From Bugula neritina (lineage: Eukaryota; Animalia; Bryozoa): DNA of 64,000 nucleotides. Shown here piece by piece: positions 9,079 through 60,192 of the stretch (position 1 is its first letter; every line of letters starts with the position of its first letter). Below the pieces are notes generated by a model. It searched no databases and was not told where the DNA came from. It saw only the letters and a program-made list of their open reading frames with translations. The DNA is taken from NCBI GenBank assembly GCA_964035545.1, contig OZ037766.1:8360722-8424721 (forward strand). Reading direction: 5' to 3'. The position numbers and the translations under genes were made by a program.

Positions 9079-9529
9079 TGTATCAGTTATCTGAAAGAGT
9101 TTGAGATGAGTTAGTCAATAAAATATATAAAAATGCAGCAGCAATAATTAGTAGTCTTGCAAATATTGAGCCAGTCAGCAAGCGAATAAAAGGCAAACTG
9201 ACATTCCAAATAAATTCAAGACATGTGTGCACAATATTTATTATAAAACTAATTGGCTGATTGGATGGTAGCCAAGATATCTTTATCTGTGAATATCTTG
9301 ATAGTATTCATGCTGCATAATGATAAATGTCAGTCGTCAAATATTTCTCAAACTTAGTTATTAAAAGCACGCATAGTTATCAATTTTTGTCTGTCATGTA
9401 AAAATCTGGCCTCTACAATGAATGAACTATAATTACTAATATTAATTACAGTGTTATGATTGAGTTTATATTATTAGTACATTCAATAGATATCGTGATG
9501 GTAGACGGTATATAGTAAAACTAGTTGTT

Positions 9530-10100
9530 GTTGTTAAACTATAACTATAAGTAAGAATAAAAGTTACATTCAATCCTTATCTTAGAGTTAATCAGTTAAT
9601 GTTATACTTAATCTTATACAGTATTACTATTAGTATAACTTGTACTGATAGTAACACTAACGCTAATAGTAATACTAATAGTTATACTTATGTCTTATAC
9701 TAATACTTGTACTTATGGTAATCATTATTAATATGATTATCAGACATTTATTTTTAATTTTATAAAGTCAAACTCAAATAGAAATGCAAGTGTTACTATT
9801 ACTATTAGTATAAGTATAACTACAAATATAAAAATAAGTATTAGTCTCAGTATATAGACAATAGACACAATCATAATTACTGTTACTCATTAGTCATTAG
9901 TGATAATATTAATAAATATAATTCCAATTCATTATTGGATTTGAAATGTATTATGTAAATAATAAATTACAATTACATATTCATATTGATATTGAATTTG
10001 ATATGGAAAAAGACTGGCAAAATTTGTATATCTAACAGTAACACTAATGCTGTGACAAAAAGGATTTCTATCACTATAAGTATAAGTATAACTATTAAAC
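9530..10100. repeat. Degenerate 6-bp-periodic array in the PDCD2L first intron
   Basis: Runs such as aatagt aatact aatagt tatact tatgtc and attact atact attagt ataagt ataact; ACT/AGT recur every 6 bp. Confidence 0.6.
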
Positions 10101-10422
10101 TTAATGGTCTACATAGCCTGGGAAATGGGAGGGGATACAAGCTGAAGCAACTGTTATGAGCATATTATTAATATTATTATAAACATAAATAATATCTACT
10201 TCAAGTTCGACACGCTCCCCAGAAACGGATATTTTGTATAAAAGAACTTATTCGACTCGGTGGTAGAAAAAATTCAATCAATGGGTATTGAACTGGAAAA
10301 GTTGTGAGCTCAGTGGTATTAATATTATTTTATTTGATATTATTTGAATAGTGACAAAATATGTGATACAACCATTCATTAACAAATTCAATGATAATAA
10401 TTAATTATTATTCTTTTATTAC

Positions 10423-10686
10423 CTGATATAAATGATGCTTTATTAAATAAGTAGACGGCAAAAATGTCGTCATTCAAACTATCAAAGGCGAAAACTAACC
10501 AAAGACGTACGTAGCTTGATAAAAAAGACAACGCGCGAAAACCGAAGCTTGCATAATAACTGGAGGAACGAAGTCACGTTTATTTACATGGCTGAGTTAG
10601 AGTAGGCCAGCCCAATCCAGCAAATCACCTTTTGTTCGCCTGTTACTGCAGACTCTCACTCTACAAGGCCTTTACACCAGCTCCAG
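10423..10686. promoter_or_regulatory. Bidirectional promoter and first non-coding exons of PDCD2L (-) and WDR76 (+)
   Basis: Locally GC/CpG-enriched island bounded by outward-facing splice donors (minus CAG|GTAATA near 10422; plus CAG|GTAAAT at 10687). The ATG-bearing exons of both genes are preceded by acceptors, so upstream non-coding exons are required. Confidence 0.6.
10533..10540 (-). promoter_or_regulatory. E2F consensus site TTTCGCGC
   Basis: GCGCGAAA on plus is TTTCGCGC on minus. It is an exact canonical E2F motif in a CpG-poor genome, at the centre of the inferred promoter. Confidence 0.5.
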
Positions 10687-10769
10687 GTAAATTATAAATT
10701 ATTCTAGCCAATAATTTCAATAATGAATGAATCATATTTTGAAAATAATTGATAAATCATTAAAAGTAA

Positions 10770-11030
10770 ATTATAAGGCCTAGGCCTAAGGGCTAAGCCT
10801 AAGCCTAAGGGTAAGACCAAGTCTAATCACCAAGTCTAACACTAATCCTGTCTAATGAGTAATGACTATTGACTATCACTATGAGTAATCGCTAATCTGG
10901 ATCAGCATCAGTAAAACTGATTCAACAAATGCAATGGAGTAACTGTAAGTTACTAAAACTGATTATTATAATGATAATCATGATGATGATGAATGAAAAT
11001 GATTATCATAATCAGATAATCATTATAATT
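10770..11030. repeat. Degenerate, drifting 6-bp-periodic array in the WDR76 first intron
   Basis: ggccta ggccta agggct aagcct aagcct aagggt aagacc aagtct aatcac...aatgagt aatgact attgact atcact atgagt. Confidence 0.6.
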
Positions 11031-12051
11031 GTAACTGGCTCCGTATGAGTACACCAGGATTTTCAAACGCAGAAGTTTATTGTAGGCTATACTTGCTGTT
11101 GAACTTGCTGGTAAAAACTAAATAAAACAAAACAAGAGTTATATAAATGATTGCATGCATAAATGTAGTTGAAAATATCAAAGTAATGCTCACAAAAACC
11201 ATGTACAAAAAAGCCATAAAAGTATTTATTACATAATGATAATTCAGATAATAATATGAATAAAAGTAACCAACCTCTTGGGTCTTTCATACATAGCGCC
11301 AGTAAATAATATTGTAAAAACAGTAGATTAAAATAGTAACAGTTTTGTTAGGAGTGGTGCTAACTGATTATAATAAGTTTGTCAAGAGTTTATATACTAT
11401 GATTGTTGTTACTGTACCAAGCATAAAGTATGTTGCATAAACAAAAAATTGGTCTTAAAATATCACAATGATTGTGTCCCAAAATATAGTAAACACTTAC
11501 TGGGTAGCCTCAGGGTACCAACCTAGCCCGGCAGAGGTAGGGCAAGAATGAGGGGCACCACAATGACTTGACCACAGATTTAATAGTCAGCACAAGGCAA
11601 ATGAGTAATGCCTAAACATAAATAAGAAGTTGATGAGGTCAATAGTTCTTTATAGTGGGTAACACACAACTAGTTATAATAATCCTAATTATTTTTACAC
11701 AAAATTAAATATTGTCAAGTAACGGTAGTTGCAAAAGTTTTACTGTAAAACTTAAACTATAGGTGAAAGCTCAAGGTTTTAGGTAGGTAGGTTAGGTAGT
11801 CTTCTATAAGTATAATTTGATTGTTAATTTTCAATTCAGTTTTGCAAGTTTTTATTTATTTGTTTTATTTTAGTTCTTTAAATTTTTATTAATATAGATG
11901 CTGCCTAGGTTAAGCATGACTATACATTTTTTATGTTTTATTAAATTATATTTTCTTCATTTGCAGACAACTATCTTGAGTAGTGGGAGTTATTCACGAT
12001 AGTGATACTTTCAAGTAATTCATTCAAAGGTGCTTGTTTTAACAAGAAGTT

Positions 12052-16590: not shown

Positions 16591-16945
16591 GTACTACCAG
16601 TATTATACTACTACCAGTGTTACACTACTACCAGTATTACACTACTACCTGTATTATACTACTACCAGTATTATACTACTACCTGTATTATACTACTACC
16701 TGTATTATACTACTACCAGTATTATGCTACTACCACCAGTATTATACTACTACCTGTATTATACTACTATCTGTATTATACTACTACCAGTATTATACTA
16801 CTACCAGTATTATACTACTACCAGTATTATACTACTACCTGTATTATACTACTACCTGTATTATACTACTACCTGTATTATACTACTACCAGTATTATAC
16901 TAATATCAGTACTATACTACTCTCAGTATTATATTACCACCAGTA
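16591..16945. repeat. 17-bp minisatellite (CCWGTATTATACTACTA)n, ~20 copies, at the start of the WDR76 3' UTR
   Basis: Directly visible tandem units starting a few bases after the WDR76 TGA. It explains ORF-track entries 16554-17072 and 16582-17061. Confidence 0.92.
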
Positions 16946-18347
16946 TTTTAACAATTATTTTGATCAAAACTGCAACAATTTCAAAGAAAAAAAATATATC
17001 AAGAAATGCATCTTCATTTTCTATTTGTATATTATTATTCTCATATTGGTTTGTCATATAAAGACATTTTAAGCTCTATTTTCCTGAAAAGCTTATATTT
17101 ATAAGTAATTTATTTACGATTTCCTAATGTATTGTTTGTAGGCCTGAAATGTTTGAGTGGAAGTTAAAAGCAAATGGTGCTGCTCAATCTTACAATAGCT
17201 TCGAATAGTTTGTTACTTTCAGTTATAGTTTTTTACTGTAATTCCTAAACAGTTTTTATCGTGAACTGCTTAAGCGAACATGTGGTTTAATATCTACAAT
17301 TTTTGTGCCATTGCATAAAAAAAAGTGAGAATTTTATAAGTTTTTCAACATTTATTGTTAAATCTACATTTTATTTATTTAGAGTAATAAAGATCAGTTT
17401 TATTGCATAAATTTTGTTTTGGTGAATTTTATTTCCTCTAACACCAATCATAAAAAATAGACCAACCCTTTTAAATATGAAAAATATTTAAAATGTCAGA
17501 TAGCGAAGCTTTTTTTCTGCCCAACAAGAAATAGAAAATTACAGAAGCATAATTATTTTGTTTTCCTTTTGCTTTTTACGAATTGCAATAGATATGCCAT
17601 TTATGATGCTCTGAATCATCACCATTGAGACTACCTTACAATGTACAGTACTTTTGTAATGTATAAAAATGTGTTTATGTCTCTCATATAATAGGATGTT
17701 TTTTATTAACTTTATATTAGGTAGGTTGATTGATATAAATAAAAATTGCAGAAAACCCTTAAATTTTTCTTAAAGTAAAGTGCATTCTTTCTATCATACC
17801 AGAATGTAATTAACACAAAAATCTATTGCATCACATTGATTGTTCTGTGATTGTTCTGTTGAAGCCATCAGTTTAATGCGGGCTCACTTTAAGGTAAGAT
17901 TTCTAACTTTCTTATCCTCGAAATTAATTCAATCGATTAAATTTCGATTATAACTCAATTCTGTGGAACAGAATTATTCAAAAAACATAGTAAAATGGCA
18001 GAAGGAATAATTAGAAAGAACTTGACTACTATTCTAATAGTTTTGATACAGGTTCATATTATTATGAATCTTCTACCACAGATCGGCTTGAGTATTACAT
18101 TTCCACTTAGAATGTTTGGTAGAGTTTTAAAGTCTTTTATGCTACCAATTAAATTTATGACTGGCTATGGAGTAGAAGACTTAATCAATCATAATGCATA
18201 ATGGTGAGTGATTTTGTGTCCAGATTCAAGTGGATATAAACTGGTAGCGCAGCACACTTAAACCAGAAGCAGCTAAACAACCCCCTAATTTTTCTGATTT
18301 TATTTTTAGACTGAAAGTTCCCATAAAAACAGAAAAAGTTAACAAAC

Positions 18348-21300: not shown

Positions 21301-24300
21301 TGTGATTTATTTTGAATACTGAGATAAATATGTATATATTTTAGTTTGAAGTTAAATCTTGAAGTTGTATGCAAGCGCGCTCTGACACTAACTATAGTAA
21401 TAGCCATAGTTATATTGATAGTCACAGCAATAGTCATATTAATAGTAAATGCTGCAGGCAAAACTGGACGATCAACAAGGAAAATGCAGCGAAGCCACAG
21501 ATTCTGTATCACCATGGTTACACAGTTGATGAACTGACTCAGCTGTATCAACAACTTGAAGATGACCTGGAGGAGTTTAAACACGACAGGTAGTCGGCAG
21601 CTTTGGTTGTCTGGATGTGTATCTAGATATATTGTTTTATACCATATTTGGCTAATGGTAGGCATATCACTTGTATTGAGATGGTCTTGTATAAGTTTCA
21701 AGCTAGGTAAACATCTCTCCAGGTTATTTTAGAGTATATCTTTATAGATTAGTCACTTGGAAAAGAGTAACTTTGTTATAGACCTAATTGTATAATTGCT
21801 ACTTTTTCAAATCTTTTCATGGAAAGTGGTGGTAAATTAACATAGTACATCTCTCTTATGCACAACATTAAATTTGTTTATACAGTGCAACAATTTTTTG
21901 TTTTTGTAAATGTTATTTCATGTTACTCCAGTTCATTTATGCATCTTAATTCAGTGAAGTTAGAGAGCTGAAGTATGCGACGCAACTACATTCCTCCCAT
22001 GCTAAAGAGATGAGAGTTGTCAACAGAAAGATTCGCAAGCTGGAGAGACAGATGAGAACAGTTCTACACTCTTCCAGGACTACAAGTAAATGCACCAAAC
22101 ACCAGGTACTTACTTAGATAATAGTTTTTAAAGGTCCTCTGCTACTAGTCACTCATGGAAACTTGAGTAACATTAACTATTTCACATAAAGACATGTGTG
22201 TAAGAAAAATAAGTTCTATGTTATATAAAGTGAAGGCATCGCTATGCGAAATCAAGTGACACTTGCATGACATCTTATTTTTTACATGTGACATCTCTCT
22301 ATATTACTGAATACATTTTTCCAATATATATACTAAGCAGTGTGATGACCTTCAAATAACCTAACGAAATGCTCAGAGGCAGACAACCTTTATTCAGATT
22401 GAAGTTTTAATACATTTAGACAAGCCTTCAGTTTGAATCGTTCATATAATTTAAAAAGCCCTACTATAAGTCTGAATAAATTATAATATATATTTTATTG
22501 TAAAAGTGCATAACAGAAAATTTAAGCAATTAAATTTAGTTTTTTATGTTAAATTTAAACCGATATTATTGGGTTGCAGGATCATATGCAACAGCATCAA
22601 GACTCAACATTGAAAGACATGGAGCTGGAGGTCATGAACTTGCAGAGCATAAATGAGGTGCTCGTCTCACACATAAAGGTTTGTTGATAAGTTTTAAGTA
22701 AACCTTCTTTCTGCTGCCTTACAACAGCTCTATTCTATAATACTGTTTGGCATCATAATATGCTTTGTAATTAGGCCTTGGAGCAAGAGCTGGCTGAAAA
22801 GACATCTGAATACGGAAAGTTATGCCAGCTGTTCTTAGACAGTCAACAATTGCCTGCAGAGCCTGCAGCCACTTCAGCTGAGGTGGGCTTAGATTTGCAG
22901 TTTCTTAGTCTATATAGCGTCAGTTCCATGAATATCTGTAGCATGACAAGTTTCCTGTCTGTGAAACTACAGACTAAACTTGAACACTCACATGAAATTG
23001 CTAAAGATTAAAAAATATATACGTGTCCATGTGATGTTAGTTTAGGCCAATGGACAGAATTATGTTGCATCCTTGAAACTACAATGTGGGAGAAAAATTA
23101 TCTTGGAACTGTTTTAAATCTAGTATATGTTTTAATTTTTCAATCTGTGAAAACACACAGCTTAGTTGGGCAAAACACACTGATCATTTTGATAATCAAG
23201 CAATGATAAAAACATGTGTTACACATGATTATTAGGTATCAAGTAGTTGTATCGTGTTGTATATTTGTTGCAGGGAGCTGACTATAGCAGTGCTGTAAGA
23301 AAGCCGGTCACCAACAAGCCACTCGTGCAAAAAGCTACAAGTTATGCTGCTACTTCTGCAGCAGACAGTGAAAAAACTGTTTCTAATGAGGACAGAAAGC
23401 CCACCACGACGTCCGAGAGAGGTTTGTGTGTTGCTCTATATCTGAACATGCAGTAAACTAGTTAGTAGTATCAAAGCTGTTCTGGTTGTTCAATCAACTG
23501 CAGCACTTTAAATTTCTCCATTTATAAGGTTTTTCTAAATGCATATTTTTGAAATGTGACTAAAGTTTTTCCAAAATAGTTATTTTTTATAAAAGTTGCA
23601 TACAGTTATTACATACTAGGGCTGCTAATCAGCTTCAAAGTTTGATAGTAATACAGTTTATAATCCAGTCACCAACGCTATGTGCTCAACTTAGTTTGTT
23701 TAGTGTGTGATCATACAGGTATGCATGTTGTACAAGTTACACACTAATTTTGGTAAATATGTAACCAAATGACACCCATGCAATGATGAGCTGATTCTTG
23801 TAGAACTATCGAATTCACCAGACCAAGAAGAGTGGCTGAAGCTACTGAAACGTCTGCTCAAAAGTAGGTCTGCAACTGCTTTACAAGAAACACCAAATGT
23901 CAATAAAAGTGAGAGTTCGGATTCCCTAGCCGTAGCCATGAGGCGACTTTTCAACGTCTGCTCCTCTCCCAGTCTGGCCAGCACATGCACTAGTCATCAC
24001 TCGCTGAGCTCGAATGACTCAGTCCTGGAAGCTATCAGAAGTATGTTTGGTGATGAGTCACCAGCTTCTAGTCTGCCGGTTGGCTCCTGTCCCGTAACTC
24101 CTTGCAACAGTGCCGACAATGTTGGTAAGAAGCAAAAGGTCAAGGCCAATATACTTGACCACTCGTCGAGTATGAAAAATGTACTACGGTGGCTATTTGC
24201 AGCGAGTAGTGAAGATTTGAAGAAGGCTTTGCCAGGTGCCAGTAATGAGAGCATCTCGTCGCTTGGTGAAGCGATGAGAAGGATGTTCAATGAAGAAGGG

Positions 24301-38800: not shown

Positions 38801-41800
38801 CCTGGCCAGCTTGTCTGAACACGCGTCCAGTATTGCAAGCGCTATCTGGAAGATCACCTTAGCACCGTCACAGAAAAAACAGTCCAGAATGTTGACAGCA
38901 CTTTCAAATGGCATCACACTGCAATAATGATTATATTCCATGTGTAGGTACTGTTACATAATATCAGGACGATGGACAAATAAATTATCTAAAATAATAT
39001 TAATTGGCTACATTAAAATACGACATTTTAATTTTGTGTATATAAATTGATAATTAATATTTAAATACATTAAATCAATTGTATCACAATTATTATTAAA
39101 AGAATGCTTTAGTGACGTATGATGAAATGGTAAAATCTACACGGTGCATGGTAGATGATATATCCGAGGGCGTGTTAGTGGTCCACGTAGCCACTTGATG
39201 TCATACCTGAGAAACATGGTTAAAAACCAAGAAAGAGCTATCATGGAGAGAAGACCAGTGGTGCTGTAATGTCCATGCAGGTGAGGCAAGTGCTCACTGA
39301 TCAGTTCTTCCAGCACACCTGCGTGTTGAAAATATCACATGAAGAAATCGTCAGCTAAACCAACTTCAGTTTCAAACAAGTATTTTGATGACAAGCATAT
39401 TGAAATTATTACAAACTATAAAAAATGTACTAAAATTATTGTTAGACTAAGATAAAATTTCAACTACAAAAAATGCAATAATTGGGAAAGTCTGACAGGA
39501 TAAACTTAACACATGCTTAGTGAAGGAATATACAATTACTATGTCATCTCTATCTGTACCTTGATCAACTAGTGCTCCTACTACTTTAGTGTTATAATAA
39601 TCAGGCAGCATTCTCTCGCATAAGGCAACCAATAGCCAAAATGCTTCCTCTTCATTAGCGAATAAGAGCAGTACACTAGTCACTATGTTCATTGCCTAAC
39701 AAGAAGGAAGCAGAAACATAGTATTGAATTTATACATTACAGCAAACAATGTCCCAATAGTACATATTTATTATCTGTTGCTTGTACTACTCATTTTTTA
39801 CATTCTATTGCAAAATCATCACATGATATCAAGCTGATATTTTCCATATTTTTGTCAACATTTCCTGTATTAAACGTTGTAGATGTAGCGATGATTGCAC
39901 AAAATTCACAAACAGCCACTAAACATGTAGACAGTACCTGACAATAACCAATGTGTGGGTTTCTAAAAGCATAAGCTGTTAAAACTCTTCTCAGAGCATC
40001 TATGCCAAGGTTAGACTGGAAAGCTTTATGTTCAGGAAGTGACCTGGAAAATACAATCACACATACTGCTATACAACACCACACTAGCTGACAAGTGATA
40101 CTATTTAATGGTTTTTATTGGCACCCTGCCTGTCTATATTATTCTTGCCTGACAAGCTGTAGATTTAAAGCATACATATTCGAGAACATGTGGCTGCAAT
40201 ATTAATCCACCAGGATCTTATCTAAACTGTGTGCTGCTAATCACAGCCAAACAGTTGAGTTAACAATAGATGCAACATGCTGTATTCAAGATATTGGAAA
40301 CAAAACCTCTTTTCTATAGACTAATATAAGACTGCGTGGTTATTCTTCTATTTTGAGACTAAATAACTACACACTCACACCTGTCAGTATTCAATTTAGT
40401 CAGGATAGATGTTTGAAGTGATAAATGTTACAGTTTATATTTGGTTAAGAGAGATACTATTCAGACATATCCAGCCAATAGCAAATCAGCATACATCTTA
40501 CCTGTGTAAATCTCTTTCTATTTCATCTGTAGCTATAGTTGTCTTCCCTTGAGTTTGTTCAACTAACGACTTATAATAACCTGGATTAGTTGCCATCTAA
40601 AATAAATCGAAATTACAAAAACATAGCATTAAACTAGTGATAGTGGCTAAAACTACTAATGGAAAACAGGTGTTTCAAGTAGTAGGAAGTAGTTTAACCA
40701 CAACTACATCATTACAGAATTAGAACTATCAAGGATGTAGTGTTCTGCTGCTATGATAAAGCACATTTGGAGTAATGCTGAAGTCTCGTTGGTAGCTTAG
40801 AATAGTGGAACTAGATGGTACCTCAGTTACTACTGCATATTGTTACTTCACCTCATTGATAGCCCCAGAGTAGACCATCCACATTTCACCACGGAGGGAA
40901 TCAGGTAAACCCCGCATAATCTCATCATGTATCTTTTTGGTCCTGTACATGCAAACACCTCTACCATATTCGGCAAACGTTGTTCTCCACAGACTTTCTC
41001 TGGCAGCATCTTTTGGTGACATACTATCGGCAGATTTAGGGCAGAAGTGCTCATGAAGCGCGGGAGACAAATCCAAAGTAAACTCGCTACTTCCTGTATT
41101 TGTCTATAAATAGTAACATTTTGATAATTCCATATCTATGTAGATTTATTAGATTTATTTCTGTAACTTGAAATACATGCATGTTGAAATTGAATACTGC
41201 AAAAAGCCCAAAAACACATGTGGTATGATATAATATAAGTATTGAACTATAAAACCCTCTACTGCACAAGTAATATGATTTACATACATGTTTAGGAGAC
41301 GGGGGAGGCGAAGGGGGTGTAGAAGAGGCACCTTGTGAGTTATCAAATGAAATATCTGTACTATTTTCATCGACGGAGGTGGTTATCTGAGTGAGTGATT
41401 TACCTATAGATCTCCTACAGCATAGAGATTACTTGTATACGGTAACTATTTATGTGTAGGATATATGTGTATCATTAGTATATATCTGTATTATTAGTAT
41501 ATATGTGTACTAGTATATATGTGTATTATTAGTATATATGTGTACTAGTATATATTATGTGTATTATTAGTATATATGTGTATTATTAGTATATTATGTG
41601 TATTATTAGTATATATGTGTATTATTGGTATATATGTGTATTATTGGTATATATGTGTATTATTGGTATATGTGTATCATTAGTATATTATGTGTATTAT
41701 TAGTATATATTATATATACTATTAGTATATATGTGTATTATTAGTATATATGTACACTAGTATATATCATATGTATTATTAGTATATATGTACACTAGTA

Positions 41801-44800
41801 TATATTATAGTATTATTAGTATATATGTGTACTAGTAGCCTATATATGTGTATTATTAGTATATATGTGTACTAGTATATATTATGTGTATTATTAGTAT
41901 ATATGTGTATTATTAGTATATTATGTGTATTATTAGTATATATGTGTATTATTGGTATATATGTGTATTATTGGTATATATGTGTATTATTAGTATATAT
42001 GTGTATTATTAGTATATATGTGTATTATTGGTATATATGTGTATTATTAGTATATATGTGTACTAGTATATATTATGTGTATTATTAGTATATATGTGTA
42101 TTATTAGTATATTATGTGTATTATTAGTATATATGTGTATTATTGGTATATATGTGTATTATTGGTATATATGTGTATTATTAGTATATATGTGTATTAT
42201 TAGTATATATGTGTATTATTAGTATATATTATGTGTATTATTAGTATATATGTGTATTATTAGTATAAATGTGTATTATTAGTATAAATTAGTACAACTC
42301 ACAGCCTGTAATCCTGCTGCTGACCCAACATGTCCGCCAACTTCAACAACATACTATTCTGGTCATACAAGTCGGTAAACAGAAAGTTTGATCTCGCACT
42401 TGTAGATATCAACAGCGCGTTGTTTATCTCATTTTCCTTGTTTCCGGTCTTCTCAACGCAAGTCACCATACGGAGTGGAATGACCAGCTGAACATCATCC
42501 TGATCCTACAGCAAATTTCACCAAATATAAGCAATCCTCCAATCAGAATTGAGCAAATGAGAAGATTGCGCCAAACTTATGGCACCACAGCTTGAAGGGA
42601 ACAAATGATTTATTTTATACTTTAACAAGTTTTAAACAATGAATAACTACCTTGCTGTCAAAACACACGTAGTTCTTAGAGACGTACAGTCGCCCACTGG
42701 TATGAGTCTTCTTGAAAGGCAACCAGAGACAGCATATAGTATCTCCATCCAGTCTCTCAGCTATCGGCAGCCTGAACAGAGTTCTATAGGCTTCACTGCG
42801 GGCTCGTGCATCTAAATCCCTCTTGAGACTGGGTATCTTCTTTTTCCTTCTGTAAAATTATAACAAACAGATAAATCACTCGTGTTGAAGAAAGTCGAAG
42901 AAGAAGCTGTATTTCAAAAATGAAAAAGTAATGACCAGTTTCTCATACCCTGCGAGTTAAAAAAACATTATTTTTCAATAAAATTGAAGAGAACTGAAAT
43001 ATTAAAAATGGTAAAAATTAACAAAGACGATGAAATAGTGTGCCACCTTGTAAACTACTTTACTTATATTCGACATTACAAAACATTTCTTAATAATTCT
43101 ATCTAATAGAAGAGAAAGAGGTGAAATCACTTAAACTATCATACTTATTTCGAGCTGGAGGTAAGGTTTTATCTTCTTCAAACCCTTCTTCTACAATTAA
43201 CCTGAAAGAGTAGCGTAACAAATAGCATAAACATTTACTTTCTTTGATTTCAGTTACTCCACAAATATTTCAACACTATAGCTGATCATTTACAAAGCTA
43301 TTGCAACAGACAACTTCCATTAGAATCTATGACATAGCATTTCATCATAATCATAAAATTTGTTTGCAAATAAAAACTTTAAAATGGTGCCAAAAATAAA
43401 TCACCATAATGGAAAACTTATAAGAATACAAGATAAATTATTATACAATACAACTATAAAGTTGCAGAATGAACTTTACACATTAATTAGTGCACATTAC
43501 AGAAAGACTTACTGGTGCATAGCCATATTCGTAAGCTGCTGCATCAACTTGTATGCATCTTCTTTGCTAACAAACATTGTGAAGTAGTGCTACAAGTATG
43601 TGATAGCAATGAGTAGTTAGTGCATGCAGTTATTTAGTAGTTTGTGTAAGCATGCGCATATACATTAATATTCACACTGAATTATCATCTACTACCTAAC
43701 TTATCTACATTCACATAATGTATATAATGGTTACAATGCTAATACAAATCATTTTTACAAACATCTAATATAAATTTACTAAAATCAGCATATGCTTAAT
43801 TCTACTGGTACTCTATGTACAGAGATATATAATATATATGACTTACATCAGCCTCTCGGGTCCCAACGTGTATTCCGTTAGGAAATAGGATATTTGATTC
43901 AATATCAAGTTGCTAAAACAAGAGAAAAAACAATAAGCTGAACACGAATCTTTAGCCCGGATAACGAAAAATATCAGCCATAATAGCAAAATATCATTAT
44001 TCTTATGGCAGTTGTAAGAGAATAATGACTAATTTTATTTTTCTAACAATTTGACAAAAAACTGTTTACCATGAGCAGAAGCTGTAAAATTTGGTATCTC
44101 TTATACCCTTGTGAAAGTGATGAAAACGAGTTTAATAATTGTGAAGCTACAAGTCAATGCTAAGCAAGCTCACCGGATAAGAAGTACATGTAGGTAAGGT
44201 ACGTATAGTACTGATTCACTTACCATAACATCAACCCATCTTGTGATAATCTTTGACTCTTTTCCCAGAAGAAATGAGTAAAAACACATGTGGTTAATAG
44301 ATAGATAGAGCCAGCCTTGCCGGGGCACTCGACGCTTGACATAACTGCACGAGTAATCTTGAGAGAAAAATAGTTTGAGATTTACACATACAAGAAACAA
44401 CACAAGTTAAACTGTTAAAAGGCAGTGCCTAACATGGCTGAGTTAATAATATGCAATTCAGAAATCTACAAAAAATGTTTGATTCAAAAAAACTAAATAA
44501 CGAGATTAAAATTTTTTTAATTAATATTTTTGGCAAAACAAACTAGTACAGAGTTATGAAGACAATTAAAGAACATATATTTTATATCCACAATAATATC
44601 TACAGTCTTCAGTCTACGACAAACTTGCATCATTACGTTATTAGACTTACAGTTGACAAGTTTTTCTTCTGGGGGCAAGTTGAATAACTTGTGGAACTTA
44701 GCAATAGCGCCTTTAAACCTCTTTGCCTCTTCTTCTTCCTCCCCTATAAGACATCATAGTTGTACCACTGATCAGCATGTATGTAAATGGCAGATGCCCT

Positions 44801-47093
44801 TTAGACCCCCAGAAAGCACAAATTATAATCCCACAGATAATGCTGGCACAACCAGCTTCCAAGTGCATTCAGTTCAAAGTGCTAACGCAGCATCAATCTG
44901 TGAAGCTGTGCACATTCATCAGCAATGCTACACGATCTTGGCAAGCCAAACCCTGACACTTGCCAAGTTTCATTAAAACTTGTAGCATAAACCTGCATAT
45001 TATAGTTAATATAAACCTGTAATTATTTATAGATCTGTTGATTGCACAAGTTTTGAAGGCTGTCAAGTTTCTACATTTCCTCAGCCGCTATTACAAGTCA
45101 TTACTAGGAAATCAATGATAATACTCACCATTCACATCACCATCTTCGTGAACAGATTCAGTCCTAAGACTTTCAATTTTACACTTTACATAATCTGTAA
45201 CCTCGTCTTCACTTTCAAAATCACCTAAAACAACATGCAAAATTACACGTACACTAAAACCAGAATATAAAGTTTAATAGTGTCAAGCTAATGTGGCATT
45301 TTTATAACCCTGAATAAGTAGTGTAAATTAAAAGAATTATTTTATTTGATTCATTACTAAATGCAACGGTGTTTATATTAAACTTGCCCAACACTGAGAT
45401 CATGTTATTCTCTAGCCATTTCCAATGCTCTTCAATTTCGGCAGTGGAGTCTGACTCAGCACAAGCTGGTAAAGAGAACAGTGGTGTCAGTACATACTAT
45501 AATATGGAGGTGTCAGTACATACTATAATATGGAGGTGTCAGTACATATTTTATGAAAGACAACGACTGTGTAACAATAATTTAATTGTCAAACGCTGTA
45601 AATTAATATTGATCTATTTAATATCATGAACATGAAAACGAGTGAAATAACAAATAACTACTACATTTAATCTGCAACATAACAATAGAGCGGATACAAT
45701 TAAAGCAACTTACCCCAGCTTAGTTCACTGTTTTCAGTTTGATGAATAATTCTATATTTGCAACTCTGAAAACATATTAGTTAGTCACTCAACATCAGTT
45801 ATTTTCAAGTGCAGAGATTCAAAAACTGTGGCAAATTTGAAAAAAGTGTGCATAAAAATGATGATTCAAGTATATTTTAGATAGAGTGAGTGAATTTTAA
45901 ATTTCCTAATATTGTAATAATGAGTAAAGTGTGAGAAGATCTTTAAGGCTATAATAAAATACATCAAAAGACATCTGTTTTGCAGAGGAATCTCTACCAA
46001 TGCATGTGAAACAAAAAATAAATTAATGTGGAGCAATAATATATATTTTACTCGACTATCAAGGACGGCATCCATAGTTCCAACAAGCAGTCCAGCTAAG
46101 CCTCGGCCTTTTCCACGACCTTTTCTATGTTGAAGTAAGAAAAACATATTTGCCCTTTCAGTGGTCCTAAAACCAGGTTAATATGATTAAAACATTGGCT
46201 AACTTTACATACGTTCTTTAAAAGTTAATAACGTTCTTTCATTAAATTATAGTGAGGGCTTGAGGTTCAGATATTTGTGTTCCTGTCATTCTGCAAATCA
46301 TACAAAACTTTTTAGGTTTCTAAAGTGTGACATGAGCTATTAGTATATTAAGTGCACTTTTAAATTTATGCTTGCAGTGCAGACATACACAAGCAGATGC
46401 TTAAAAATTTAAACTTTGCCAAGACACAAATATTTTTACGTGCAGTAACTAGTTTCGTGAATACTAGAAATAAAAATGGTTACTTTGTTTGAATTATGAC
46501 TCACACATATGCATAGCTTCATAGAGAGATACTATAAAATCCCACACTACAGTATGCAGAATAGCATTAGTATCACTAAACACTACCAATAGTAACTTAC
46601 AACCTTTCCTGCCGACAAACCACATTTTACAGAGGAAAATAAAGACTGTGCTGACTGTGAACCAGTTATTCTTCTGAACAGACAGAAGAGGATATTCAAA
46701 ACACTAGCTATTTAAAGACTGCAGAAAGGTTTTCCTGTATTTAAGCTACTAACCTAAGCAAGGCTGGCAACTTTCAAGTTAGCAGCTTGCTAAAGATTTT
46801 TCGATAAAATCTCAAGAAGTAAAAAAATGATTATTAGATAAAAACACAAAGTGCATTTTCGTGTGCTTTAAAAATTGATAAAATCCTAAAAGTAAGTCAC
46901 ATTGAAAATGTTTTAACTCATACAATGGAATTTTAACAAAAAGCAACTGTCAGTATATTGAAGTGTGATTAAACTTAAAGCTGGTTAATTAATCAAAATT
47001 TAAATGAACAAATACTAATAAGAAATATAAGTTAATGCAAGTATCTTACCATAAGGCGTGAGCTAACAATATTTCTTCACACTTGACCCACAT
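32872..47093 (-). CDS. TBC1D9: TBC1 domain family member 9/8-like RabGAP (two GRAM domains, TBC domain, EF-hand), >20 exons
   Basis: [31 protein letters not shown]...[16 protein letters not shown]; YSCSY...[24 protein letters not shown] (GRAM); [21 protein letters not shown]; [11 protein letters not shown]; [13 protein letters not shown] (R-finger); [15 protein letters not shown] (Q-finger); [17 protein letters not shown]; [14 protein letters not shown] (EF-hand); [12 protein letters not shown]...[16 protein letters not shown]. Confidence 0.94.
41461..42293. repeat. ~19-bp AT-rich minisatellite (TATATGTGTATTATTRGTA)n, ~40 copies, filling a TBC1D9 intron
   Basis: Directly visible tandem units with variants. 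It explains ORF-track entry 41903-42088. Confidence 0.92.
45483..45548. repeat. 26-bp tandem repeat x2.5 at a TBC1D9 3' splice region
   Basis: ggtgtcagtacatactataatatgga repeated. Confidence 0.85.
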
Positions 47094-47567
47094 CACGAAT
47101 GTCTGGTCGCAGCACTTAAAACATCCTAGCAGTCTAAACGGACAAACTTATAATGAGATTCAAAAGAATTAATGCCTAATCCACAGAATGAAAATGGTAA
47201 TTATTATATATGCAGTGTTAGTTAAAACGCATGCAATTATTTCTGTAAATTATTCTTATGAGCAATTATATATACAATTTGATTAAATTTGACAATAACC
47301 ACATTTAAAGTTATAACATATTTAAACAATACTTGAAAAATGAATAAATTGTAATACGAAATACAAGTTAATGAAAGTTAGGATTAGCTTTTTGTCTTTT
47401 ACCCATACTAATACAAAAACTTATAGTTATACTTATATTTATTGCCAAAACTCAAAACCATTGATAAATACGATTAAAAAGTAAAGACATGAAGGGATAA
47501 TAACCTTAACAATACATGCAATCATGCTGACAGATGATACAATTTATCAATTGCCAATGACTGATAT

Positions 47568-47775
47568 GGGTTCCTGTCGTTTCGTACACAAGTCGTTTCG
47601 TACACAAGTCATTTCGTACACAAACTGGTGTACACAAAATGAATAATGAATTGACCCCCAAACCCAAACAATGAATAAATATCAAAAAGTATGTATTTTA
47701 GTTAATTTATATTGATGTGTACGAAACGGCATGAAAAAGTGTGTACAAAACGACTTGTGTATGAAATAACCTGTT
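47568..47775. mobile_element. Small non-autonomous inverted-repeat element
   Basis: Left arm has three tandem 16-mers GTCRTTTCGTACACAA. Right arm has three degenerate reverse-complement copies (TGTGTACGAAACGGC, TGTGTACAAAACGAC, TGTGTATGAAATAAC). Central CCCCCAAACCCAAAC. Confidence 0.65.
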
Positions 47776-47789
47776 CATGATTCGTATCT

Positions 47790-48480
47790 TCATCATGCTA
47801 ATAGTAATAGTAACTCATATATTTACTTTTAAACTCATGTTGATGTCGTAATCATATCACTATAGATATTCATATCAACCACAAGTATACATTCACCATA
47901 TCAATAATAATAATAAAATTTAGTATCAAACACTTTAATTTGATACTGTATGTTAAAGTGTAATAATCTTATATGTATAGCAATGCTGATAGAGTAGTAG
48001 TGCTAGTTATAGCTTACAAACAATAATAATGACACTTCTATTAGCACTAGTAACTACTAGTACTAGCATAGTGTTGCTGCTACTACTAGTACTACTAACA
48101 ATAGCAAGTACAGTAACAACAGTACAGTAGTTATATATATATACACTTATACTTAAAGTTATGCTAGCAGTTTGAACAAGTTTAAATTTAAATTGAAAAA
48201 ACCTGTCTTTAATTTAACTTTAAATAATGGTCTCACTTTCTACATTTATCAAAAAAGTTTTTGAAAAGGATATGTCCCTTCTCTGTATTTGCTGTTAAAG
48301 CAAAGTCTTACTCTTAAGTTTTCTGTATCAGTATCACATTCACTATTACTAGAACTATCAGTATTACTATTAGTATTAGTAATACTAATACTTATACTAA
48401 CTTAGGAAGTGTAATACTAAAACTAAAAGTAAATCTAATAGTAATAATACTAATCCTTATATTAATAGTTATAGACTTAA
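47790..48480. repeat. Degenerate 6-bp-periodic array in the TBC1D9 5' non-coding region
   Basis: agcact agtaact actagt actagc atagt...; atcagt attact attagt attagt aatact aatact tatact. Confidence 0.55.
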
Positions 48481-49099
48481 AATTGAAAACAGTAAATTTT
48501 TAGAGAGTTAGACTTACTTTTTGGAGTGTTTCTAAAAATAAGTAAGTTAAAATATAAAAGATTTAATTTAATTTAAATTTATTTTAATTTTTAAAAACGA
48601 TATGTTTAAATTTGTATGCCTATGGAAATAACAATAATTGCATTTGAATATGGCTCAGTTTTTCGTAATGTGATGTAATTATAATGATTATCAGATTCCA
48701 AAAACTGAAAAAGTAGCACAGTCGTGTAAAACTAAACTTATGTTATTATTTGTTACTCAAGTTCATGGTTTACTGTTCAGAACTCGGCGTGATGCGTTTC
48801 TAAAAGCTAGACAAGAAATATTGCCTTTGAGTTGTCTTACTTAAAATCGAAATCAGTCTCGTTCCATGTCTAGAAATGTAAGAAACAAAAAGAATAATGT
48901 TTAAATAATTAAAATCTTTCAAATAAATATTTAATATATTTATTAAAATTTTTATTTGTTTTCATTAAAAAATATGCTCAAAATAATTCTAAGTAGACTG
49001 ATAAAAATAAAGCTTTCTCGAGGCTACAGATACGTTACCCAATCACACGATTTGCTATGTGGACTTTTTTCAGGGAGCTGCCATTGCTCAACAAAACCG

Positions 49100-50330
49100 G
49101 TGTATACTAATACTAATACTCATAGCCAAACACATACAGTCGTACTTTATCAAGATATTTTGCTAATACGAAAAGTAATACTGATCGCGTATTATTGCAA
49201 TAAATAAACCGATTTATTTGCAAATTCAAGTACGAACCTCATACTCAAGTATGAGTATCAGACTGAGACTCAGTATCAGTATGACAGTGACACTGACTAG
49301 GAGTAGGAGTAATAGTAATACTAATTCAAATTGTAAAACTAAATTATTATTGTAATTATAGTAAAATACTGACTTTTACTTTGATACCATGACCATCAGT
49401 GAAGGATATGCCTATGGCCGTATGGGCCATGGTAATGCCATCACCATGGGCATGGGCATGTCCATTGGGCTTGGCAATGTGAATGCGATTGCCATTCAGT
49501 TTCAGTTTCACACTGTCAAATGAATGTCATTGTGATACTCATACTCATACTGATAGTAATGCGATAGTGATAGTGATTGGTCTTGGAATTACTGATTGCC
49601 ATTAACTTTAGGTGAATACCATACTGAAACTCATAGTCATACCTCTTACCTCTTCTTCTTTAGTATGCACTAGGTCTAGAGCATGTAGCAAGAGGCACGC
49701 CTCTACAGTTTCTGATTACAGGCCAGCAAGTATTTTCAGTGTGTTGCACTTATGCAACTCTGGTGTATTGACTAATTATTTAGCATAGATTTAAGCTCCC
49801 GGACTGTTTTTGGAAGGAAGCTGCTGTAGTAGGCTGCTGATTTTGCAAAAATGGTTGGGGGATCTTAGTCTTACACTTGCAGCATTTTGATAGTGATACT
49901 GATAGTCATACTCTGTACTCATACTCAGTGTAACTAGTATTATTAGTGTTGGTGTTACTATTACCGTAAGATAAAGTATTACTATTACTATTAGTATTAC
50001 CATTAGACTTAGTATTACTATTATTATTAATAATACTGTTAGTATTAATATTTATATTAGTATATGATGATGATGCTATATGTACTACTATTAGTATTTG
50101 ATTCAATCTGTTAGAGGCTATTACATTTACTTTTACTGTTAGTTTTACTATGACTATTAGTATTACTGTATTGGTATTACTATAAATATTAGACTTAGTA
50201 TTGCTATAAATTTACCAAGCTATTTGATTTTATTATTATAAATATAAGTATTTACTTTTAGTTTTAGTATTTTGAATAGTATAAGTATTAAATTTAGTAT
50301 TACTTTATTACTATTAGTATTTACTTTTAG
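49100..50330. repeat. Two degenerate 6-bp-periodic arrays (49100-49650 and 49880-50330) flanking a GC-richer core between TBC1D9 and STT3A
   Basis: atgagt atcaga ctgaga ctcagt atcagt atgaca gtgaca ctgact aggagt aggagt aatagt aatact; gatact catact catact gatagt; gatagt gatact gatagt catact; attact attact attagt attacc attaga cttagt attact. Confidence 0.65.
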
Positions 50331-50870
50331 CTAAAGCTTGAATAATCTTTAACACAGACACAGTTGCACTTCATTTAGTTTTACCATTCTCACTCTCAGA
50401 CTGTTTGAGGGTTCTATGCTCAACCAATTTTTTTTTATAATAAATTTTGTGGAAAAATGTCTTGAATTAATTTTGAATTCTTATGGCTCTCTGATGCCGT
50501 TTCCAGTCTGCTTTTAAATCTGTGGTATTATTGGAAAACTGATAATGATTATTGCAAACTTTCTTTTTATGCTATTTTTGGCTGCTGCAACACAGCCACA
50601 AGAACACTAGAACCAACTGAGACTGTCATCAGCAGTAAGCAATCAGAAATTTTAAATTGATTTGTTTGAATTTTAAATTGATTATTAAATATTGAAAGAA
50701 TGGTTGTTTTTAAAATTATCTTTTTATGGAAACATTGTGTTTGTTGAGCTCATATATAAATAAATTTATTGGAATTTGTTTAGTCTCAGCTTATTAGTTT
50801 ACTAGCTTTCTATTTTGTTGTGTTTTTCATCAAGTATTGCAAACTTAGTTTTAGGTAAGAGGCTGTCAAG

Positions 50871-56794
<5,924 letters not shown>

Positions 56795-58159
56795 AATAGT
56801 TAACTCTGCTTCCATAGTATGGCTAGGATGATACTCTAGTAGTGTGTAGGAGCGTATGTTCAATCATAAATTTACACACGTGGTCTGTAGCAAGGTGTAA
56901 AATATTGTTGCACTTTTCACATCTTCTGTTCATATCCTGTGAGCTAAAATTGCTTCTTCAGCTTTTGTTTTTCAAGTGGTTCAAACATTGTCTTAACGCT
57001 CACTTAATGTGTATATTATGATTTTTATAACTAGCTTTTTGTATCTTTGCAATGTCGCACATGCATCAGATTTGATTTTAGATTTTAACGTTTGATGAAT
57101 ATGATTAGTAGAAATTAAAATAGCTTGTACAGCAAATAAAGCTATATGCATTCCTGCCAATTTAAAAACATGCTTTAGTTGCTTTGTCTCCAAAGATCAG
57201 TTTTGTAGTCTCTTTTTGAGCAAATCATACTTGATTTTCTAGGTCTAAAAGTAGGATAATAGCTGGTTGGGAGACTTGTAGAGTTAGTCATGAGATTTGA
57301 ATGCAAACAAACTGACAATTATGTGCCTATAGCCTGCTATGCTACACAGCTGCAAATTCCGAGATTATTGTATCAACTAGCTAGAGCTCAGAATTTTTGG
57401 AAGACATCTGCAGTAAAATACAATTTGGTGTACTCTAAAGTTTTACTTTCAAAAATAAATAATTATATACAGATTTGCAAGTTAGAATAGAACAGGCAAT
57501 TATTTATTGCAACCATTGAAATTCAGTGATCGCAACTGCTTAGTGGAATAATCAGAAAATGTACCAGTGAACCACTTATTTACTCAACGGTTTTTTTGTT
57601 TGAAAAGACAATTTGTAAAATGGTGAAATGTGTAGAGGTGGTTGCTTAATGGGTGATGCAAAATGATTGATTTTCACATCATCTTTTAAGAAATTTTAGC
57701 TTATTGTTCAGCAGGTAAGATTTACTTGAAAGTTACAAAATATTTTGCTAAACTAAGCAACGACCATGGATAGGCACGAGAGTTTGTTGCCATGATATAA
57801 ATGGATGCAGAAATAGCTTGCAGAGAGCCACAGGGTGGTTGGACTTTGGAGGGGTTTGGGATTTAGACAACAATGTCTATACAAAATCTGAACTTACTAA
57901 CCCTCATTTGGTACTGCCTCTAGCAGTGTGTGCCTCAGCCTCGTGTAGGCAGAATACAGGAGTTGCTGTCTTTTTTAAATCGAGGTCGTATGGTGCCAGA
58001 CCTGTAGCGCAAATTTCACCGACACACGCAATTTATTTGTGAATAACGTGCCTTGAGACGTCCTGATTTCGTGCAGCCTTTAGATTATAAGAACTTACCT
58101 GCATTGTTTTTACTGAGACTATGAACTCTATTTGCAGAAAGTTTACTGGTCATTGTTAA

Positions 58160-59100
58160 TACTAATAGTAATAATAAGTATAATAATTATTTATTTATGA
58201 TTTAGATTTCAGATCCATAACAGTCAAAATGACTTGAATTACGTCTACTTATAAAAGTATAGCCTTTTCAACAAAATTATTAGCATTGCAAACAAAAATC
58301 TAAAACCCCATCCTTGCAGTTGTATACTCAGACTTATAGATATACTTATAGTTATACTTATACTTATAGTTATAGTAATAGTTAATGTTATTCAGTTATT
58401 GTTAATGTTATACTCATAAGTTATAGTTATACTTATATTCACTCTCATTTTTCAGTCTCATACTCAGAGTCATAGTGATACTCATACTGATACTGATAGT
58501 AATACTGTCTACTGATACTCATACTCATAGTGATAGTCATACTCATAGTGATAGACTTAGAGCACAGTGATAGTCACTCAATGTCATACTCATACTGATA
58601 CTCATAGTTAGTCATAGTGGTACTCTGATAGTCATACTAATACTTATAGTATTACTAATAGTAAATGTAATAGTAATAGTGATACTCAAAGTCAAACTAA
58701 TGAATCATACTCATACTGATGCTCATCCTGTCATAGCCCATAGGCATAGATTAAAGTTGAACCAAATTGAAATTGAAAGGTCAAAGTGCAAGTACTAAAT
58801 TGCTATTGCTATTAGTAATACTGTATTAGTAATACTATTAGTATTAGTATTACTATCAGTATCACTATTAGTACAACTCTTACTATTACTATTAGTAATA
58901 CTAGTACTGTAGTAGTAGTGCTAGTAGTACTAGTATTACTAATAGTACCTTTGAATACCTTTGTAGACATAGTAATGGTTAAATTTAATGTTATAGACTT
59001 ATACTTATACTTATAGTCACAATAATTATAGTAGTAATTATTGTAATCTAAATTATATTTATAAATCATAATCATAATGATTATCATAATCAGGTCATAA
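58160..59100. repeat. Long degenerate 6-bp-periodic array upstream of the GPAT coding exons
   Basis: 58440-58740 has consensus NATAST (catact cagagt catagt gatact catact gatact gatagt aatact...). 58810-58950 is mostly the opposite orientation ATNAST (attagt attagt attact atcagt atcact attagt). Confidence 0.75.
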
Positions 59101-59108
59101 TGGTGTCC

Positions 59109-59335
59109 GGTAAAAATGGCACCGCTAATCAAGGCACAAATGGAAAGGTAGATAAAATGGCACAGTTTCAATATTAGGGTTTGGGGTGGGGTTGGGTCTT
59201 TAGAGATGGAGGTTTAGGTTTGGGTTGGGGTTTAAGGGTTGAGGATTTGAGTTTGGAAATTTTAACATCTGTGTTCCATTTTTTCCTACTTTTCCATTTG
59301 TGCCTTTAGTACATTTTTACCGTGCCATTTTTACC
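59109..59335. mobile_element. MITE-like element with TIRs and a G-run core
   Basis: Perfect 14-bp TIR GGTAAAAATGGCAC...GTGCCATTTTTACC, inner inverted pair GGCACAAATGGAAA / TTTCCATTTGTGCC, and a core of telomere-like AGGGTTTGGGGTGGGGTTGGG...GGTTTGGGTTGGGGTTTAAGGG. Confidence 0.75.
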
Positions 59336-60192
59336 TAAAATTGGTAATGATATTTATATTGATATTGAATTAAATAATATAATTAATAATATCAATAAAA
59401 ATTATATAAATAATAATTATAATATATCCTAAATTATCATTATCATTTGCATTATGATAATTGTAATTATAAAATGTTATGAAAACTATAATCTTGATAA
59501 ATATAATAAGGATTTCTAATAATTACTATTATCAGTTATTCTTAAAATAATACTTATAATAGTTTTCATCATAATGATCATGATTACGGATTAGCTTATT
59601 TTTTTGTTAAAGCTCAAGGTCTTAAATGAGGCTTCAGGTTTACAATGGGAATTTATGTTTAATTTCATCTAAATAATTAAGCAACAATATTCATATTAAC
59701 TATTTTTGATTGTAATTAAATTAATATTAGTATAATTCTATTTGCAAACTAAAATTAAATTGTCTTCAAGTCAAAGGTAAATTTTAGGTATTAAAATTGA
59801 GTACTATGATTATATTATTATATGCAATAATATTAATTATGATATTGCAATTTATGGTAAATTTAAATTACTAAAATTTGTAAATAAGTTTATTTAGTCT
59901 AATTTTTTTATAGAGCATCATCAATGTCACTTTAGAGTTATTAGACTTAGAATACCAGTATAACTTGGAGATAAAATAATCAATAGGTAATAAGGTTATC
60001 AATCAATATGATTTAATATATGCTACAATAAGTCTAACATGCTGAATAAAAATGTAATAATTGTTTTGCAAAACTGCCTATTGCCATCATAATAAATCAA
60101 TCCCAAATCTAAGAAAATTGAGTTTAAAATGGTTATAATCGTACACCCAGGAGCTCTCTATGCACGGTTGACTGAAGGGTTCAGCTTGGAAT

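Follow-up and report, generated by a model that had tools for sequence, protein, structure and literature searches.

Degenerate hexamer arrays in 5′-proximal DNA of Bugula neritina and a rule of complement exchange between their neighbouring units

We investigated degenerate hexamer arrays in a window of 64,000 nucleotides from the bryozoan Bugula neritina (NCBI GenBank assembly GCA_964035545.1, contig OZ037766.1, positions 8,360,722 to 8,424,721 of the forward strand; positions below are those of the window). The arrays in question, at 49100-50330, lie between a TBC1D9-like gene on the minus strand and STT3A on the plus strand. Our main finding is a new rule for how neighbouring units differ: a base with mutually complementary flanks (A.T or T.A, the dot marking the base itself) is exchanged for its own complement. 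An original prediction, made from the sequence alone, had taken the GC-richer middle of these arrays for the core of a divergent promoter; the piece is instead the last ~215 bases of a 5′-truncated retrotransposon on the minus strand. On balance, we lean slightly towards reading the arrays as a mutational scar that arises locally, perpetuates itself, and is left by some process of DNA copying or repair, not as a selected periodic signal. The window DNA is AT-rich (about 33% GC), and the genome searched was the 216-Mb assembly.

Complement exchange between neighbouring units

Exchange of C and G is the most frequent difference between in-phase neighbouring units (CG 128, AT 115, AG 54, CT 44, GT 43, AC 26). 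It accounts for 31% of the neighbour differences in the arrays, against 4% between diverged paralogues of ordinary DNA (L005, L006, and L008), where it is the rarest class (AG 120, CT 100, AT 108, GT 46, AC 32, CG 18). The exchange depends on the flanking bases. When the centre is C or G and its flanks are complementary (A.T, T.A), 394 pairs were swapped and 373 were the same (51% swapped), whereas non-complementary flanks gave 11 and 115 (9%); for A/T centres the corresponding counts were 141 and 553 (20%) with complementary flanks, and 81 and 1117 (7%) without (nominal Fisher test: C/G, P = 1e-21; A/T, P = 9e-18). The rule also holds within the arrays of 49100-50330 taken by themselves (29 swapped and 28 same, vs 1 and 13 in other contexts). 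The immediate neighbours alone matter, the swapped share being 57% at sites with three-base symmetry alone and 55% at sites with five-base symmetry.

Relative to independence at local composition, C/G centres have a ratio of 1.05, i.e., they are fully randomised, and A/T centres are randomised by half (0.53), whereas the remaining sites are clearly inherited (0.23-0.29). C and G occur at ~1:1 in every array and in every flanking context, and the pattern A[C/G]T recurs at 46% six bases on and still at 27% at +24. ACT/AGT is enriched 2.0-fold and TCA/TGA 1.4-fold in the arrays compared with the rest of the window, and the consensus around a central C/G is T(72%)-A-S-T-A(53%), S being C or G.

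In control comparisons, the 17-, 19-, and 33-mer tandem arrays of the window gave 0 swaps in 62 comparable pairs, and A[C/G]T and T[C/G]A sites compared between paralogues on contig C8 gave 7 C/G exchanges, 31 other changes, and 214 conserved sites. The 17-base array (16592-16947, 21 copies) is well kept, and the 19-base array (41457-42286, 43 copies) has a higher order of 191 bases; both lie in or beside gene bodies and contain ACT/AGT sites that show no C/G swapping.

How fast bases are exchanged can be judged from recent copies. Neighbours that share a private variant were already randomised at C/G (22 swapped, 19 same), and very similar 18- and 36-base copies co-inherit their C/G states; swapping is therefore fast, yet not instantaneous, and it need not accompany each act of copying. 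Either state is frequent at T.T and A.A sites (CC 15 and GG 33; CC 18 and GG 12, respectively), and neighbours agree. We considered one-way mutation into an absorbing state at these T.T and A.A sites and rejected it, both states being common there; physical inversion of three bases was also rejected, having been seen in 1 of 376 and 8 of 1611 cases.

The contrast between contexts constrains the cause. Because swapping is high at A.T and T.A and low at T.T and A.A, the cause is not one that responds separately to the 5′ neighbour and to the 3′ neighbour on a single strand: separate responses would force the product of the rates in the first two contexts to equal that in the last two, which the contrast excludes. 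This interaction between the flanks argues against chemical context effects and against a route through a deaminase and REV1-type bypass. The cause must see the duplex as two-fold symmetric.

Periodicity, extent, and the retrotransposon fragment

The original prediction described 6-bp-periodic DNA on both sides of a non-periodic piece at 49650-49880, and this description holds. Compared with dinucleotide shuffles, lag-6 identity gave z = 7.8 at 49100-49390, z = 10.2 at 49390-49640, and z = 10.6 at 49880-50330, the observed value being reached in 0 of 500 shuffles each time, and the middle piece at 49650-49864 is without period 6 (z = -1.1). Lag-6 identity is 0.51-0.56 across the flanking arrays and ~0.2-0.3 at other lags; no lags but 6, 12, and 18 are raised, and lag 10 is at background. 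When bases were recoded as weak or strong, the lag-6 signal was strongest (0.76, vs 0.65 and 0.62 for the other two recodings). The GC-richer block at 49395-49512 (49% GC) has a lag-6 identity of 0.54 (z = 6.5 vs shuffles), so the periodicity is not a by-product of AT composition, as had been claimed, and the progressive drift of the unit that had been listed there can be followed in the sequence. The array units are of mixed bases, and A or T tracts phased in register over hundreds of bases were not found. The further claim that phase is largely kept stands for short blocks (median 21-29 bp, maximum 43-70 bp, 3-10 units per block) but not over long range, as a phase-coherent Fourier scan over 240 bp gave no peak in the arrays. 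Tandem Repeats Finder returned periods of 6, 12, 18, 30, and 36 in the array to the right of the retrotransposon fragment; a census of such periods was not useful, the arrays being too degenerate.

A sliding scan of lag-6 identity marked eight stretches in the window: 9513-10191, 10755-11104, 21304-21516, 47762-48539, 49157-49681, 49814-50399, 58144-59129, and 59342-59617. The DNA at 49100-50330 is thus periodic as predicted, but the arrays reach well beyond it (47762-48539 and 49157-50399), and it forms the right-hand part of a field of hexamer micro-arrays ~2.6 kb long (47.8-50.4 kb). This field occupies the middle of the 3.8 kb separating the ATG exons of the TBC1D9-like gene (minus strand) and STT3A (plus strand). 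Its left part (47790-48539, with the lag-6 excess at 47762-48539) has blocks of 18-70 bp with units such as TTASTA and TAATAS. The micro-arrays to the left of the fragment (49100-49649) include the GC-rich block at 49395-49512 (CATGGG, CATTGG, AGTTTC) and SATAST units at 49532-49577, with triplet counts of ACT 23, AGT 19, TCA 20, and TGA 19. Those to its right (49865-50399) begin with SATAST and continue with ATTAST, TASTAT, and ASTTTT units, are T-rich on the plus strand, and contain ACT 27 times and AGT 24 times. AT skew flips sign at 49200-49600, from A-rich on the left to T-rich on the right (plus strand), i.e., inside the field and at neither ATG exon.

A 551-bp array query against the assembly matched other arrays on all large contigs over just 35-109 bp. 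Because the matches are only short, the arrays are a genome-wide kind of sequence and not copies of one element. Copies of one transposon-borne satellite, the outcome that the original prediction had named as fatal to its view, were accordingly not what we found, and two gaps beside the arrays (48530-49160 and 10195-10750) are single-copy in the genome. An unselected block of 200 kb (contig C1, 5.0-5.2 Mb) contained two array clusters, one of which, 2.1 kb long, lies at a plus-to-minus switch of AT skew; the remaining lag-6 stretches of that block are dinucleotide repeats or a coding repeat. An Rfam search of 49000-50500 gave no match, and full-text literature searches found no description of such hexamer arrays. 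The passages of bryozoan genome papers reached by keyword either leave tandem, simple, and hexameric repeats unmentioned or give overall repeat content only.

The non-periodic middle piece (49650-49864, minus strand) is the 3′ end of a non-long-terminal-repeat retrotransposon (long interspersed nuclear element, LINE). An assembly search with 49640-49885 returned at least 40 matches of 88-95% identity, mostly on contig C8. On the left, the aligned copies all end sharply at ~49650, next to a short TACCTCT repeat (a tail of two TACCTCT at 49640-49654), and the window copy loses homology at ~49864, where other copies run on rightward (alignment A1); the copies are fragmentary in differing ways. 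Directly upstream in element orientation, the longer copy L003 has two pieces of reverse transcriptase (RVT_1, E = 1.9e-10 and 4.4e-7). The copy L017 has an open reading frame (ORF) that looks endonuclease-like by eye only, Pfam giving no call. The promoter reading of the core is therefore abandoned, as the piece is a repeated LINE 3′ fragment and not promoter-specific unique sequence.

Units of the same kind (SATAST) stand on both sides of the fragment, which fits insertion of the LINE into one continuous field. The putative target-site duplication (TAGTCATAC on the left and the similar TAGTCTTAC on the right) could be a chance match, given that both flanks are arrays of the same kind. Period-6 DNA was found just past the LINE 3′ end in four of four independent readable copies (L002, L003, L004, and L005), and the family may have a target preference for hexamer arrays (n = 4). 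About 35 copies of the LINE 3′ end lie on contig C8 of assembly G000 at 0.15-4.5 Mb (among them L005-L008), irregularly spaced at ~30-150 kb and with homologous flanks; this cluster looks like a large family of dispersed or segmental repeats, with 99.9% identity between L006 and L007.

Origin of the arrays

The mutational scar that we slightly favour would arise as follows. Judging from their anatomy, blocks of 3-10 units would grow by duplication in multiples of 6 bases (6, 12, 18, 36), and in-register duplication of one to six units plus point changes would retain the period while the unit sequence drifts. Misalignment in a periodic tract is possible in register only, and the period would thus survive growth without further help. 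The central base would most plausibly be swapped by very short template switches between strands at N.N′ sites; the swap itself, which leaves ACT and AGT, like TCA and TGA, interchangeable at 50:50, is observed. The process may be active in 5′-proximal non-coding DNA of the B. neritina genome. The LINE 3′ end (215 bp) has landed inside the field. The original prediction that period rather than sequence is maintained survives in so far as the period outlives the unit sequence and is independent of AT-richness, but selection fits this less well than does a process at the DNA level. Of the alternatives it offered, the footprint of such a process is the better one, although ordinary slippage of 6 nt alone leaves the complement swaps unexplained.

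If the arrays are a mutational scar, they are a natural record of the places in an animal genome at which DNA is repaired or copied in an unusual way, and the complement-swap rule offers a precise signature to look for in other phyla and in population data. More tentatively, an undescribed DNA-level process, concentrated within about a kilobase of gene 5′ ends, might build hexamer lattices and copy them “strand-blind”, randomising the orientation of every base pair that has mutually complementary flanks. If so, it would require machinery with two-fold symmetry or else template switches of very short length between the strands, and may mark recurrent breakage, replication initiation, or transcription-replication conflict.

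Several points weigh against the mutational scar. The P values of the swap rule are nominal only, because the pairs overlap and are non-independent. To our knowledge, template switching on one complementary base is not an established high-rate process, and a fold-back (mirror) test of the C/G strings, with few qualifying centres, found no larger mirror symmetry. Pairs with shared private variants are randomised, yet recent copies of 18 and 36 bp are faithful, results that pull in opposite directions on the relative rates of copying and swapping. The clusters number five or six within 264 kb, and AT-skew orientation around 16 clusters was in the expected direction in 11, which is not significant.

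The arrays share features with several known systems. Like the periodic A/T clusters (PATCs) in introns of C. elegans germline genes, they are non-coding DNA associated with genes, and their period is better conserved than their sequence; unlike PATCs, with their period of ~10 and A/T tracts, they have a period of 6, no tracts, and phase over 3-10 units, and they tolerate transposon insertions. The analogy drawn in the original prediction consequently fails on period, tracts, long-range phase, and the three transposon insertions tolerated. Promoter tandem repeats and cryptically simple sequence have been described in yeast and human. The arrays resemble these and degenerate micro- or minisatellites in their head-to-tail units, patchy families, higher-order copies of 12-36 bases, and intergenic or 5′ location. 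They depart from cryptic simplicity in that hexamers dominate and many independent micro-arrays lie side by side, and from slippage microsatellites in that neighbouring units differ mainly by C/G exchange confined to complementary-flank sites.

The closest likeness to the exchange itself is with quasi-palindrome template-switch mutations and minute hairpin-loop inversions, in which bases are complemented at the centres of inverted repeats in a strand-symmetric and recurrent manner. In the known cases, from bacteria, yeast, and chloroplast DNA, the stem has to be several base pairs long; in the arrays, a single complementary base on either side is enough, just one base changes, and larger palindromes were not found. 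The middle piece resembles 5′-truncated LINE insertions into simple repeats (3′ end only, many copies, reverse transcriptase upstream, a short repeat tail, simple-repeat neighbours) and differs in that the possible preference for hexamer arrays comes from only four independent copies and that its target duplication is ambiguous. Immunoglobulin switch regions, which lie just downstream of promoters, are likewise tracts of kilobases in which short, degenerate units repeat in tandem and a self-complementary hotspot abounds. The likeness goes no further; a deaminase model fails the flank test in the arrays.

We regard as rather unlikely a selected chromatin or licensing signal of the PATC type with a 6-base period, in which selection keeps the weak/strong pattern. 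It would explain why the period persists over very different units and GC contents, why weak/strong recoding is strongest at lag 6, and why complement swaps leave the duplex with the same dinucleotide steps, a change that a physical constraint blind to strand would permit; the arrays here also lie in 5′ regions of housekeeping-type genes. Selected arrays would represent a novel type of cis signal, blind to strand and free of sequence. However, phase coherence is absent beyond 3-10 units, a period of six bases bears no relation to the helical repeat, and within 64 kb the arrays have tolerated three transposon insertions in or beside them. Moreover, C/G fully randomised while A/T is inherited needs, under selection alone, very old arrays, whereas the shared private variants show recent copying; an STT3A locus without arrays, described below, is a further, weak point against selection. 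The main rival among readings of the arrays as scars, also unlikely in our estimate, is a nuclease whose cuts in the two strands are always 6 bases apart and fall at short sites of two-fold symmetry, either a transposase leaving footprints of insertion and excision or a LINE endonuclease whose insertions abort. Each event would duplicate 6 bases and make new target sites. The unit length is fixed whatever the sequence, and the swap rule needs a two-fold symmetric cause. Period-6 DNA past the 3′ end of all four readable LINE copies and two families of miniature inverted-repeat transposable elements (MITEs) in or beside arrays point the same way, as do hairpin-forming transposases (Ac/Ds), whose classical footprint is a complement change beside the break. 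Yet we identified no element that has AST termini or duplicates 6 bases of its target, the putative duplication beside the LINE copy is ambiguous, and the transposon superfamilies that we could match add 5, 7, or 8 bases, not 6. Copies of the LINE family also number no more than about 50, most of them in a single cluster on C8, and recent growth was apparently by 18-base units.

Dense binding sites (T-A-[C/G]-T-A) for a two-fold symmetric protein blind to the orientation of the central base pair would account for the enrichment of ACT/AGT and TCA/TGA, the consensus, and the equal frequency of C and G in every context. Such sites are nevertheless an improbable cause: period-6 blocks exist without the motif (CATGGG and AGTTTC at 49395-49512, GTTGAC/CTTCAA in the 200-kb sample), the swapped base depends on its immediate neighbours and not on the pentamer, A/T centres swap too, and the ACT/AGT sites of the 17-mer array do not swap. 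We consider it very improbable that the C/G swaps stem from an AID/APOBEC-like cytidine deaminase that targets transcribed 5′ regions, the uracils then being removed and bypassed by a REV1-type route, as happens in switch regions and in the hypermutation of antibody genes. TACT/AGTA does fit the WRCY/RGYW hotspot. The genome also has an ORF matching the NAD1 family (G000, contig C3:14308235-14308645, minus strand; an open frame of 185 aa; Pfam, 46 bits, over the cut-off, E = 5.7e-10), and AID/APOBEC-like deaminases of this family are known in lophotrochozoans (PMC5889660). But swapping is high at A.T and T.A and nearly absent at T.T and A.A though both states are present there, A/T centres swap, no strand bias of C vs G is seen, and a search of the genome with the APOBEC_N profile gave no match. 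An assembly or consensus artefact of quasi-palindromic low-complexity DNA, in which reads could in principle align to the near self-complementary lattice in the wrong orientation, is hardly credible. The paralogues L006 and L007 are 99.9% identical through the period-6 zone, which excludes assembly noise as the cause; diverged paralogues keep their AST and TSA sites, C/G states are repeated faithfully in higher-order copies of 18 and 36 bp, and the arrays are under 1 kb with unique DNA on their flanks.

Flanking genes, single-copy gaps, and MITEs

Gene calls were made from exons searched singly. The ATG exon of the TBC1D9-like gene (47052-47094, minus strand) starts at 47094 and is followed by the donor GTAAGA, and GRAM and RabGAP-TBC domains lie on minus-strand exons further downstream (Pfam). 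The start-codon exon of STT3A (50871-50957, plus strand) has an acceptor-like ttttag 16 nt upstream, and the next exon (51143-51322) matches STT3 proteins (PF02516) with an identity of up to 98%. Both ATG exons fall outside the array field, and acceptor-like sites stand just before the ATG of each gene; the arrays may lie either in front of the transcription start or within an intron of the 5′ UTR. The other two clusters of the window are flanked by a PDCD2-like gene (minus strand), a WD-repeat gene (plus), and a GPAM-like acyltransferase gene (plus). At three of three clusters the arrays lie 400-2000 bp upstream of an ATG exon; their predicted location in 5′ intergenic or 5′-proximal space thus holds for three gene pairs in the window.

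A metagenome contig (L042, ENA, 6804 bp, 42% GC) carries a homologue of the second STT3A exon with 97% amino-acid identity and shows no period-6 arrays in 3.9 kb upstream, which is weak evidence. A second match to an STT3A exon (L041) has 184 bp of upstream sequence. Scanning metagenomes with an exact 25-base pattern of STT3A exon 1 gave no match.

The gap at 48540-49100 is weakly periodic (lag-6 identity 0.38) and single-copy, with a CCAAT box at ~49038; it is a candidate for a bidirectional promoter together with first exons, which would end at 49099 on the plus strand and begin near 48841 on the minus strand. A possible donor, CCG|GTGTAT, lies at 49099/49100, exactly at the start of the array, and is weaker than the strong donor CAG|GTAAAT that ends the unique gap at 10687. 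We take the unique gap of 48.54-49.16 kb as a likelier candidate promoter than the LINE piece. The original prediction had counted the locus as the second head-to-head promoter with the same layout. Arrays do occur in both head-to-head intergenic regions, but the gap between them is unique DNA at 9.5-11.1 kb and a transposon here. A motif comparison among the non-periodic gaps found no shared promoter motif.

Two of three island-type gaps checked in the window are transposons (the LINE fragment and a MITE at 59108-59345), the third (10195-10750) being unique; for annotation, non-periodic islands in such fields are thus often transposons and not promoters. Altogether, three transposon insertions lie in or beside arrays of the window. 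With a LINE inside the field and a MITE at its edge, the arrays behave as insertion-tolerant DNA and not as a promoter core with two symmetric arms.

The MITE that adjoins the left edge of the field (47565-47775) has terminal inverted repeats (inverted arms I2, I7, and I24) and at least 163 candidate copies of 74-90% identity. It carries a 16-base triple repeat, GTCGTTTCGTACACAA, and its word TTTCGTACACAA turns up again in the 200-kb sample, close to a (TA)n(GA)n repeat (L032, ~1740-1760). The second MITE (59108-59345), a gap inside the arrays upstream of the GPAM-like gene, has at least 670 candidate copies; its terminal inverted repeats are of ~14 bases (GGTAAAAATGGCAC...), and its centre consists of degenerate telomere-like GGGTT(T) hexamers. 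A short telomere-like array of GCCTAA/GGCTAA units (reverse complement TTAGGC, TTAGCC) at 10774-10826 opens the array to the right of the gap between the PDCD2-like gene and the WD-repeat gene.

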